From NCBI GenBank assembly GCA_021613535.1, contig CP075492.1:13082001-13146000 (forward strand): DNA of 64,000 nucleotides. Direction: 5' to 3'. This DNA comes from Adineta vaga (lineage: Eukaryota > Animalia > Rotifera). How positions within the stretch are numbered: the first letter of the stretch is position 1; every line of letters begins with the position of its first letter. Of the stretch, positions 47,538-51,933 are shown in pieces. The notes below the pieces were generated by a model. It was not told the origin of the DNA. It ran no database searches and was given only the letters and a program-made list of their open reading frames with translations. The position numbers were made by a program, and so were the translations under genes.

Positions 47538-50500
47538 TTATTTAATAGCTTGTAAAACACCATTCACTCGTTTGGATGTGATTTGACCATCTTCTTCGGT
47601 TATTTCAGTTACCTGACCATTTTCTTCCACTCTATACACAAACAAAAGAGAGAGAAACAAAGTAATCTTTTTTTGATAAGAGATAATCAAAATTTGATGT
47701 TACCTCGTCGTTGTAACACGGCGACCATTGATTGATTTAGTTGATTTAGTAGTTTTTTTCGAAATCGGTCGAGAACCATTGCCACCACTAGAAACAAATG
47801 CAAACAAATTGATTTTGTTTTTCTTTATATTCATATAAAATCTACATACCCAAACGAGATATTAAATGATGAAATTGTTCCCATATTATCTCCACCCAAA
47901 TTACCGGCAAATGATTGATGATTGAATAAAGGCGTTCTCATTGGAGAAAAGAAATTATCGAACAAAGTCATTTGTTGTGGTGCACGTCTTGAATTGGAAC
48001 TATTTGGATCTCGACTATGGCGACGGTGTAAATCAGCAAATGGATGCATACCAAAACCTAGAAACGAAATATCATTCCAATCAATTCTTCCACGAAAAAA
48101 CAACAAAATTTCTAGTTAAAATAGGATCATTTTAGATGCAATTTTAGTTAAAAAAAATTTCCCATCACCACATGCGCAATGCAAGCATCATTCAAAAACG
48201 AGAAAAATTCCTTCAGAATCCATCTGGTGTTCTCACCAGAACATACTATATGATGTGTCCATATGTCTAAAAATAAGCCAGAAGCAACGTATGCAAGCTT
48301 ATGCTTATGTTTGTTGTTCGTTTTTATTTTTTTTATATGGGCTTTGTTGAATTGATTAAACGAAACATACGAACTTACCAAACTCATCTTCCATGCCGAA
48401 ATGTGACATGAATTGTTCAAAGATATCGAATGGATTGTGAAAATGAAATGTTCGATTAAGAAAATCTTCGGAAAATCTTCCATAACCTTCATTCGATGAA
48501 GAACCACCATTGTTACCATTGGTGAAAGCTCCTCTACCCAACTGATCATATCGACGACGTTTATCTTCTGAAAATTTTTTTAGAAAAAAAAACAAAAACA
48601 CATATATCCATTCTAGGTTAGTAAAGAGCAATTAATGAGCAGCAGCAGCAGTAGTCGTCATGTCTACTTCAATTCCAATTTCCCATGTGTGATTTTCTAC
48701 GAAAGTTTTTACCTTTACTTTTTTCCTTGAAAACTGGTTTATTATTAATTGCTGTTTCATTTTTATGACGAATACTACGTCGAATACTTTTTAATGGTGA
48801 AGTTAATTTCGATGTATTATCTGATATTCCATCAGTAATTGTTGGTGATGGACGTTTATCACCTGTATCAGTTTGACAACTCATATGTCTCATAGATTTC
48901 GCACGACGAAGACCAGGACTAGCTGGTAATGGATAATCATCTAATGTTTCATAACTAATTAAACGAAAATCTTGATATTGATTTTCTGTTGTTTTATTAT
49001 TTGGAATTTCTAATAATTCAATGGATTTAATATTATTAGGAATTTTATCTCCACCAAGTGCAACAGCAGATGAAATAATACCTTGTTGACCAAGAATTAA
49101 AAGTTTATCACGTTCATCTTGTGATGGAATTGGATGAGAGATAAGATTATCAACCAATGTACATGGTTTACGTAGGAAACAATTTAGATTTGTTTTAGGA
49201 AATTCAATATCGTCAATACGATGACGAGCCATTTGTTCTTTTACGGACGTAAGCAATGATGGAGCTTGAACAAATTTGGCACGATGCATCGAATGAATAC
49301 GAGATGATTGAGTAGCAATTGGATTAAAATTTTCCATTGTTGCAGCAAAACGTGCCGCTTCTAATTGCTCTTCAACAATTCGAGCTAATGCAGCAGAATC
49401 AAATTCCCGTGATTCACTTGTTGATGATATTGTTGAACGTCGTCGTGGTTCAACATATGTTTGTCGTCGTTTAATTGTAGGTTTTTTATGATGATGATGA
49501 TGATGATGATGATGAACTTCTGGTTTGGTTATTTTTGGTTCTTGTAATGTCGGTGGTGGTGCGCAAGGGGGCATTACTGGTGGTTGCTGTTGTTGTTGTT
49601 GTTGCTGCTGCTGTGGTGGTGGTGGTGGAGATCCTTGCTGCTGCTGCTGCGGTAGTTGTTGTTGTTGTTGTTGTTGTTGCTGTTGTGGTGGTGATGGCGG
49701 CGTTGGTGGTGATGGTGGTGTTGGTGTCGGTTGCTCCTGCTGCTGTTGCTGCTGCTGCTGAGAAGAGTGACGAACATAATCATGTATTTTAATCAGACGT
49801 TCGATATCATTGGAAAGATTTAGATTTGAAAAACGATTATTTTTTATAATATTTTCATTTTCTTCGGGAATAATATTGATATATCGTTTAACGAATTTTA
49901 AATCAGAATTCTCTCGATCAACTTGAAAATCATAATAAACTGACATATTTATTTCATGAACAACACGTGGTTTTAATTCATTTTCGCTTTCAGTCGTTGC
50001 TGGAATTTCTTCATAATCATTTTTATTTGTTGATAAGATAAATGCTGGTAAATCTTCTTTATCAAATGTGTCATGTTGTTGAAATTCTTTTTGACAAACA
50101 TTAAGAAATTCTTCATCATCAATTATTGTACGAAATAATTCTTCTAATTCTTCGTTGGTTCGTTCGCTATAAATAATTGATGAACCCAATTGATCATATA
50201 AAAACCGTCCACGACCTGTTTATATATTTATTAAGGGGAAAAAAAGAAACGACTACTGCTGATGCTGTTTTCTTCAAAAAGCATGAAAAGCTTTTTCTGT
50301 TTTTTTTTATTTTCTTCATTTACTCACTGTCTGATAAAATTTCATATGCTTCAGAGATTAATTTGAATTTTTCTTCTGCTTGACTTTTATTTGAAAGATT
50401 TTTGTCCGGATGCCACTAGGAGAATATGAAAGAAGAGAAACCGCGTATTATTATGAAATTGAAACCAATTAGTATATACGCAATGTTTTACCTTTAAAGC

Positions 50501-50638
50501 TAATCGGCGATATCTAAAAATAGTATACATATAATCTAATTAGATGATTCTTATCTCGACAAATATAACATACGCTTTCTTGATTTCATCTTCAGTGGCC
50601 GTCTTCTCGACCTCAAGTATTTCGTAAAAGTCGGTCAT
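47538..50638 (-). CDS. DNAJB6: DnaJ homolog subfamily B member 6/2-like co-chaperone, canonical isoform of about 249 aa (exons 50574-50638, 50492-50513, 50328-50415, 48379-48567, 47850-48057, 47704-47787, 47538-47631)
   Basis: J-domain [10 protein letters not shown]...YRRLALKWHPDKN...[24 protein letters not shown]; G/F region with [13 protein letters not shown]; C-terminal domain [43 protein letters not shown]. Confidence 0.92.
48669..50215 (-). CDS. Alternative terminal exon of the DNAJB6-like gene encoding a polyQ/polyP/polyH low-complexity tail (isoform of about 573 aa)
   Basis: An acceptor (pyrimidine tract...AAACAG) at 50216-50217 is in phase with the J-domain donor at 50326-50327, giving ...[21 protein letters not shown].... 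The frame is open for 1547 nt. Confidence 0.8.
49490..49760 (-). repeat. Coding trinucleotide repeats (CAG/CAA, CCA, CAT) giving polyQ, polyP and polyH
   Basis: tgc/tgt/tgg/tga runs are directly visible on the plus strand. Confidence 0.9.
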
Positions 50639-51933
50639 TGTAAAAATTTACTAAAACAAGATAGAAATACAATGATATTTTCACGAAAAAGATTTCTTGA
50701 CAAAAATATCTCTCTTTTTTTCTCATCATACAGTAGTTACTTGTCGTTTACTTATCTAAATATACTCTATTGTCCATGTCTCTTTTTCTTTTCTCTCTCT
50801 CTCTTTCTTTCTCTTTCTCTGTCTTCTCGTCTCCTTCTACACCGAAAGCAAATGTACAAGCGTTCGTACATATCGTACGCTTACGACAAACTAACTATGT
50901 ACATTATGTGTATAAAGAAAGCAAAAGAAAACAAAAAACGATGAAAGACAGACAACGTCGTTTTTATTATGACGCTACGTCGTACAATGATCATCCTTGT
51001 TGCAATTGACTGCTCTTCAAAGTCTACCTTGAACTGTTCGACAATGATCTTGACAGAGAAGAAAAAAGAAACGAAACGAAATGTATAAAAACCTTCACGC
51101 CGCAATGCTATGACGATTAGAATTATGAACCTAGGTGAATGAGCACCAAATTATAAGTGCATACCTTAGCAATTGATTGTCGTTATAGATAATTTGACAA
51201 GCAACAGACGAAAAAACGAAAAGAGGGTCAACCTAAACGAAATAATATTGACAAAAAAGAAATTCCATGAATAATGATTGTCTCGTTGAGATATTCTCTT
51301 ATCTTTGTCACATCTCCGCCGATTCAGTGACAGAAAAAAAAATAAGAAGAGAAAAGTCTTCTATTCAACACTACCTACTGAATCTACTTAAGAAAATGAC
51401 ATCATTTATTAACAAAGAAGAAGAAGAAACGAAAGAAGCAAGTCTACGAAAAATCGATTGTAAATATGAATAAGGAAATATATTAGTTATAAACGTTATT
51501 TCCTTGGAAAAAGCCTGTTGAGATTTTTCTTTTCTTTACTAGAAAAGATAAAAAGTCTTCGGTAGTTGTGACGACCGTAGGAAGAAAACGAACAATAAAA
51601 TCATCGTAATCAAAACAGAATACATACTTAGTTGTAGTTTTTATTTAATATACTTTTGTTGGATTGATCATTCTTCTCGTTTTTTTAAAGAAAAAAAAAG
51701 GCGGGGAAAAGTAAATGGACGTCATAAATGAAGGACAAATAAATAAATATGAGATGAAGGGAGAAAAAAAGAGAGAAATCGTCCGATTGGATGCATATCT
51801 AGCCAATCCAATGAGTATGTTTTATTTGCATTACTATGTCAATTATTACGCAGCGTACTCGTCATGTGCTTTGACTTCTGAATACTTATCAGCTGCTCCT
51901 ATATATAGTGACAGTAATCTTCAGAAGTATAAA

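Follow-up and report, generated by a model that had tools for sequence, protein, structure and literature searches.

Several systems are known in which base pairing between distant parts of a transcript influences the choice of exons. In Drosophila Nmnat, two boxes surround the proximal acceptor, bring the distal acceptor near the donor and are needed for skipping; when the stem was broken the distal acceptor was used less, and compensatory mutations brought its use back (PMC2724269). The human CASK, PHF20L1, DST and GPR126 genes contain conserved and stable arms in both of the introns that flank a cassette exon (PMC8052449, PMC10790352), and amongst human looped exons stronger pairing is associated with less inclusion (PMC8052449). 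In Drosophila Dscam1, exon choice is governed by long-range intronic pairing that displays compensatory changes (PMC10790352, PMC12962786).

A DNAJB6-like gene of the bdelloid rotifer Adineta vaga, I4U23_014987, most likely represents a new and well-supported example of the known exon loop-out mechanism. A conserved helix of about 19 bp, formed between two introns, would loop out a symmetric cassette exon, with skipping as the default and inclusion when the helix is absent, an explanation whose probability is put at roughly 0.8. No paper on this duplex was found in the literature, nor was any such structure found described for the bdelloid or rotifer group.

The gene lies on the minus strand of the window, which is the whole 64-kb stretch of DNA that was analysed (from contig C3), and all of the features described below are on this strand. 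A non-coding 5'-UTR exon (approximately 51679-51628), which precedes the ATG exon by about 1 kb, is known from the spliced contig L035. The first coding exon (50574..50650, with the ATG at 50638) and a 22-nt J-domain exon (50492..50513) were placed from the sequence and the alignment of L035 to the window, and are followed by a J-domain exon with the HPD motif (50328..50415; Pfam PF00226 and L035), which ends in a phase-1 donor (50328/50327) that is common to both isoforms. The canonical next exon (48379..48567) encodes the end of J-domain helix IV, the G/F region and a helix-V-like motif, and three further exons (47538..48058) encode a DNAJB6-type C-terminal beta domain, as indicated by L035 and by structure matches. 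The other introns of the gene are mostly 56–74 nt long. With a near-identical protein as the query, the best PDB match of the skip product is human DNAJB6 (PDB 6u3r, E 2.5e-36), a match that spans the J-domain, the helix V motif and the C-terminal beta domain. The protein belongs with the DNAJB6/B8/B2-like group, having a J-domain with HPD, a G/F region with helix V and the DNAJB6-type C-terminal beta domain. In most orthologous loci the gene is arranged head-to-head with an F-box/Kelch gene and has an EF-hand gene after it; several Rotaria models fuse this EF-hand gene to the long isoform, probably erroneously.

Between the shared donor and the canonical next exon lies an in-frame cassette exon of 1503 nt (48713..50215), equivalent to 501 codons in phase 1-1. 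It is preceded by an upstream intron of 112 nt (50216..50327; 80–148 nt in the orthologues), which has an A-rich, pyrimidine-poor acceptor, and is followed by a downstream intron of 145 nt (48568..48712; 101–169 nt in the orthologues), which begins with the donor GTAAAA. The cassette acceptor is A-rich beside its AG in 14 of the 15 loci. The sequence-only reading had correctly placed the end of the alternative acceptor AG at 50216, that of the canonical AG at 48568 and the length of the skip intron at 1760 nt. Its exon model, on the other hand, overlooked the cassette donor at 48713|48712 and let the exon run on to a stop. This stop, a TGA at 48669, is in fact intronic, lying 41 nt into the downstream intron, and its position is not conserved; in the orthologues the first read-through stop is found 5–173 nt past the donor, and in L026 there is none within the intron. 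The protein conservation of the long exon ends at KEKSKG, where the donor sits, and the G|GTA donor is kept in 14 of the 15 loci, six of them with differing preceding codons; L026 probably uses a GT three bases upstream of the usual donor. In none of the 15 loci does the cassette contain a stop, and its length, 849–1503 nt, is always a multiple of three; it opens with another version of J-domain helix IV, which duplicates the first codons of the next exon. Finally, L027, a contig from a distant lineage, has the cassette spliced at the predicted donor to the canonical exon, with the later introns absent. Taken together, the conserved donor, the inclusion junction and the unconserved stop identify the exon as a cassette that is neither mutually exclusive nor last, which gives an exon loop-out rather than a mutually exclusive switch.

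The two arms of the helix, 50267-50249 (arm 1) and 48658-48640 (arm 2), are located where the sequence-only reading had put them. An inverted-repeat search recovered the same 19 nt on each side with 18 pairs, arranged as 5 bp, one U-C mismatch and 13 bp. Arm 1 (50249..50267) is CAG/UAG-rich and begins 60 nt past the donor at 50328|50327, in keeping with the distance first proposed; arm 2 (48640..48658), which was traced by the inverted-repeat search and the orthologues, is composed of CUA/CUG repeats, contains several YGCY motifs and ends 72 nt ahead of the canonical acceptor. The loop between the arms measures 1590 nt. With 60 nt and 72 nt outside the arms, only about 130 nt of the 1760-nt skip intron remain unpaired, as had been calculated before. 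The branch point suggested for the canonical acceptor also has a counterpart, a branch-point-like TACTAAC (48617..48623) whose CTAAC is 54 nt upstream of that acceptor.

The energy of the arm duplex is -30.5 kcal/mol according to RNAduplex; exon loop-outs of this kind are recognised by complementary segments of at least 10 nt, at -15 kcal/mol or lower, in the two flanking introns. Against dinucleotide shuffles the inter-intron duplex of the window has a z of -6.0. When the 1791-nt pre-mRNA segment was folded in full, all 18 pairs had P>=0.95 at both 20 and 37 °C. Arm 2 has a single partner in this fold, with a P of about 0.94 averaged over the arm, and other partners are below 0.003. Amongst 644 seeded inverted pairs no more than 3 kb apart in the window, only the pairing of arm 2 with CAG tracts of the exon is equally stable (-30 to -34 kcal/mol), and the next unrelated inverted pair is at -27.7 kcal/mol. 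None of the Rfam RNA families matched at gathering score in four orthologous loci.

The fold extends the pairing beyond the arms into a second helix, in which a pyrimidine tract ending in a C-run behind arm 1 (50234..50248, followed by a branch-like motif) pairs with the stretch preceding arm 2, where the partner of the C-run is a G-run, GGGAA (48673..48677), that is found in 12 of the 15 loci. On its own this second helix is weak, with z between +1.2 and -2.4. It had been proposed that the duplex masks the branch region of the alternative exon. The predicted pairing does reach over the pyrimidine tract of the cassette up to the branch-like motif, but the second helix is not significant alone, and hence such a cover is best regarded as suggestive. 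Two other small elements were seen in these introns. A small hairpin upstream of arm 1 (50293-50277), consisting of AAGC, a pyrimidine loop and GCUU, recurs in L014, L019, L020, L024, L028 and L032. Between the cassette donor and arm 2 (48712-48659), 12 of the 15 loci carry one to three copies of a TAGA(A) motif, often near +12 and just ahead of arm 2; in six loci this motif provides the read-through stop, at +11. It is possibly a protein-binding site.

The arms are present in all 14 orthologous bdelloid loci in which both introns are readable, making 15 with the window. They are the best conserved blocks of their respective introns, standing above the flanking intron sequence, and they carry compensatory changes. 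In the 13 loci tested, the z of the duplex against shuffles ranges from -3.7 to -6.7. Covariation was tabulated in a fixed 19-position register anchored by motif, from which two small indels (in L017 and L019) were removed by hand. The 270 cells of this table contain eight pairing-preserving double changes, which fall at six positions in six loci, eight single changes to wobble pairs and 14 broken pairs. When arm 2 is permuted among species, in a procedure that ignores relatedness, 1.6 double changes and 23.9 broken pairs are expected, with a P of about 1e-5.

The double changes are spread along the helix. At pair 1, C-G becomes G-C in L033, at pair 4, C-G becomes U-A in L013 (R. socialis) and at pair 12, G-C becomes A-U in L015 (R. 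sordida), the same pair being G-U in five other loci. Pair 14 changes from A-U to G-C in L033, pair 17 from C-G to G-C in L019 and to A-U in L026 and L033, and pair 18 from G-C to A-U in L029. The mismatch of L033, the locus with three double changes, is closed. A swap test gave the same picture, with arm pairs from the same species at -29.4 kcal/mol and cross-species combinations at -24.8 kcal/mol (p 4e-5). Moreover, in L026 the UAG and CUA repeats have expanded together on opposite arms, and in L029 a private extra helix, UUA-UUG/CAA-UAA, has grown on both sides. L034 fits poorly, with only about 11 of the 18 pairs in the ungapped register. Pairs 8–11 are invariant across loci, which may reflect an additional sequence constraint. 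The co-evolution of the arms across 15 related gene copies means that they almost certainly pair in the RNA. The checks against shuffled controls and orthologous loci that had been recommended came out in favour of a long-range duplex so placed that it could loop the exon out and make the skip intron shorter.

The enclosed exon has been seen both skipped and included. The spliced contig L035, which is 85–97% identical to the exons of the window, has the exact skip junction from 50328 to 48567, and the A. vaga annotation of I4U23_014987 gives only the short form, the 249-aa skip product. Both L035 and L027 come from relatives, and the inclusion form is represented by the single distant-lineage contig L027 together with predicted Rotaria gene models; the Rotaria annotations found for this copy give the long form only, of about 700 aa. 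It was also observed that the first 11 nt of L027 (1-11) are the end of the upstream intron although all of the later introns have been removed, and so it may be a splicing intermediate in which the upstream intron is slow, or a transcript that starts inside that intron. Eight short J-proteins on contigs of roughly 1 kb fall outside the clade of the cassette-less paralogue (100/99 support) in trees built from the C-terminal parts of the proteins, and they are presumed to be skip products, one of them (P0039) having been checked at the DNA level. Homologue searches that scored 8000 candidates each found no transcript-type ORF containing both the J-domain and the cassette. In transcript-like contigs, skip-type proteins far outnumber inclusion-type proteins, and skipping is probably the default and commoner form.

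A second copy of the gene, I4U23_027760 (L006, C6:1700011-1701541), has neither the cassette nor the arm motifs, which shows that the exon and the arms occur together. Its intron at the cassette position is 240 nt, longer than usual. A Didymodactylos contig groups with this copy and stops short of the cassette region. An ATG8/GABARAP-like gene, recognised by eye from its translation, is apparently head-to-head with the C6 copy.

The protein encoded by the cassette has 39 invariant residues and a mean column identity of 45% over 20 sequences. After the helix IV substitute, conserved helical and beta-hairpin blocks are separated by variable linkers in models of low confidence; AlphaFold gave a mean pLDDT of 49.5 and 47.6, and Foldseek matched only the DNAJB6 parts of the modelled protein. 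Searches of Pfam, of the ESM Atlas and, with a profile, of 1.8 billion proteins did not provide the cassette with an identity. The profile search returned 12 clusters at E<=1e-30 with no convincing match outside them, and the named members are all bdelloid. A zf-C4H2 Pfam match in the cassette was set aside, as it is below its cut-off and covers a polyQ stretch. In A. vaga the cassette carries an insertion of about 90 aa of polyQ, polyP and polyH (49490..49762, approximate limits), which is missing from the aligned orthologues; the protein that carries it is related to a chaperone whose known activity is the suppression of polyQ aggregation. [quoted passage not shown] Inclusion of the cassette would move helix V hundreds of residues away and could in this way loosen its inhibition.

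In the proposed mechanism, the paired helix would place the exon of 0.85–1.5 kb in a loop and leave only about 130 unpaired nt between the J-domain donor and the canonical acceptor, whilst the pairing probably also ties up the pyrimidine tract of the weak cassette acceptor. The default mRNA would then skip the cassette and encode the ordinary DNAJB6-like chaperone of 249 aa. Without the helix, both short introns would be spliced, and the product would be a J-protein of about 750 aa with a substitute helix IV, then 280–500 new residues, and only after these the G/F region and helix V. The covariation demonstrates pairing and not the direction of its effect on splicing; that the paired state should favour skipping is argued by analogy with Nmnat and the human looped exons.

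What might open the helix can be approached through the sequence of arm 2. A better lead than the CAG tracts of the exon, though still a doubtful one, is a muscleblind protein bound to its YGCY/CUG cluster. MBNL favours inclusion from sites downstream of an exon, prefers sites that are unpaired or weakly paired and can shift helices towards unwinding (PMC6158504). The downstream intron contains 2–8 YGCY motifs against 0–3 in the upstream intron, most of them within arm 2 itself, and 12 of the 15 loci have retained one more YGCY immediately 3' of arm 2. Two muscleblind-type loci, with three PF22628 matches each, are found at C1:7399579-7402340 and C4:5553245-5556914. The rate of elongation or a small RNA are alternative openers, control by a small RNA or microRNA having been reported for Nmnat (PMC13092977). 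A broader and frankly speculative proposal, which is considered unlikely as a whole, is that of a protein-gated switch, whereby muscleblind, another CUG-binding factor or a small RNA would open the helix via arm 2 and the U-C mismatch, in particular cells or upon desiccation. This would make a bdelloid-specific giant DNAJB6 isoform, whose substitute helix IV and new scaffold would free the J-domain of inhibition by helix V and direct Hsp70 towards new clients.

The duplex may also be explained in other ways. It is possible, if less probable than regulated skipping, that the helix is an unregulated, constitutive splicing aid that bridges the 1760-nt intron and that the cassette is included only rarely or leakily. 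The shortness of the other introns in the gene and the excess of skip-type proteins in transcript-like contigs would both fit, and the bridging step is common to this explanation and to the loop-out. However, the cassette ORF is intact and conserved, with its invariant residues and 45% identity, which indicates that the inclusion product is under selection. Moreover, the U-C mismatch is retained in 13 of the 15 loci even though one change would repair it, which suggests a tuned stability or a binding site. The exon could instead be an alternative last exon of the Nmnat type, as in the sequence-only model; the donor would be read through to a stop and polyadenylation, and the J-domain would receive a new tail in place of the DNAJB6 C-terminal domain. 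A read-through stop does occur within 41 nt of the donor here and at 11 nt in six of the 15 loci, and L022 and L026, which lack the G|GT donor, depend on an A|GTAAA close by. Yet protein conservation ends at the donor, G|GTA persists in almost all loci even where the codons before it differ, the stop lies anywhere from 5 to 173 nt away or is absent, and L027 is spliced at the cassette donor. As the main form a terminal exon is rejected, because the stop is not conserved and the donor is; the reading is quite improbable overall, though such an exon could coexist as a third, minor isoform.

An opposite effect of the helix is more improbable still, namely that it promotes inclusion or orders splicing, either by joining the ends of the long exon as a unit or by blocking decoy AGs in arm 1. 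Arm 1 does contain four AGs whose distance from the donor, 63–75 nt, is typical of introns here and whose use would shift the frame, and RNA bridges can favour inclusion (PMC8052449). Nevertheless, the geometry joins the outer splice sites and not the inner ones, the predicted pairing covers the pyrimidine tract of the cassette, and looped exons are on average less included (PMC8052449). It had also been suggested that the CAG tracts of the exon compete for the CUG arm, capturing arm 2 and freeing the acceptor. In this species the isolated pairing of arm 2 with an exon tract reaches -29.1 kcal/mol, against -33.4 kcal/mol with arm 1, but in the full fold it has P<1e-4. Runs of four CAG are found in only two of the 15 loci, the other 13 having runs of no more than two, the aligned orthologues have no polyQ insert, and in every locus the strongest partner within the exon falls 4–21 kcal/mol short of arm 1. 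A conserved switch by CAG competition is rejected, since long CAG tracts are species-specific and lose to arm 1 in the fold, and this suggestion now appears highly improbable. Least credible of all is a chance complementarity of trinucleotide repeats, or the presence of two independent protein-binding motifs. Both arms are certainly repeat-like and CUG clusters are known protein sites, but neither origin agrees with the eight matched double changes and the swap test, nor with both arms missing from the exon-less gene copy.

The loop-out reading is preferred to these explanations, and it has a bearing on the chaperone family. The rotifer protein resembles human DNAJB6 in its J-domain, its G/F region with a helix-V-like motif and its C-terminal beta domain (PDB 6u3r). 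The human DNAJB6 isoforms a and b differ at the C-terminus, whereas in the rotifer protein the alternative part forms a large insert where the J-domain ends, for which no homologue was found elsewhere. An anti-aggregation chaperone of a desiccation-tolerant animal would have a long isoform that is missing from the A. vaga annotation, where only the short form appears.

With regard to RNA structure, the locus resembles Dscam1 in its long-range intronic pairing with compensatory changes, and the rotifer cassette begins with a duplicate of the next exon's first codons. It differs from Dscam1 in lacking competing selectors and mutually exclusive exons. The docking and selector analogy that was originally drawn does not hold, as there is one arm per side, with a single partner, and L027 joins the cassette to the canonical exon; Dscam-type mutual exclusivity is rejected on account of this junction and the conserved in-frame donor. 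The likeness to Nmnat is that of two boxes around a proximal acceptor which bring a distal acceptor near the donor. The Nmnat loop, however, is about 350 nt and contains a terminal exon and a poly(A) site, whereas the rotifer loop of 1590 nt holds an internal in-frame cassette, and the second rotifer box sits in the downstream intron. The human loop-outs of CASK, PHF20L1, DST and GPR126 are similar in having conserved, stable arms in both introns that flank a cassette. By its energy the rotifer duplex falls into their most stable class (-30 kcal/mol or lower), for which skipping is expected, although the rotifer introns are only 80–170 nt around an exon that is about ten times longer. In comparison with the human cases, where 3204 of 909,146 regions reached covariation significance (PMC8052449), the covariation of the rotifer helix is unusually clear. 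The locus offers a natural test case for exon loop-out, in which disrupting, wobble and rescuing changes are already present among species.
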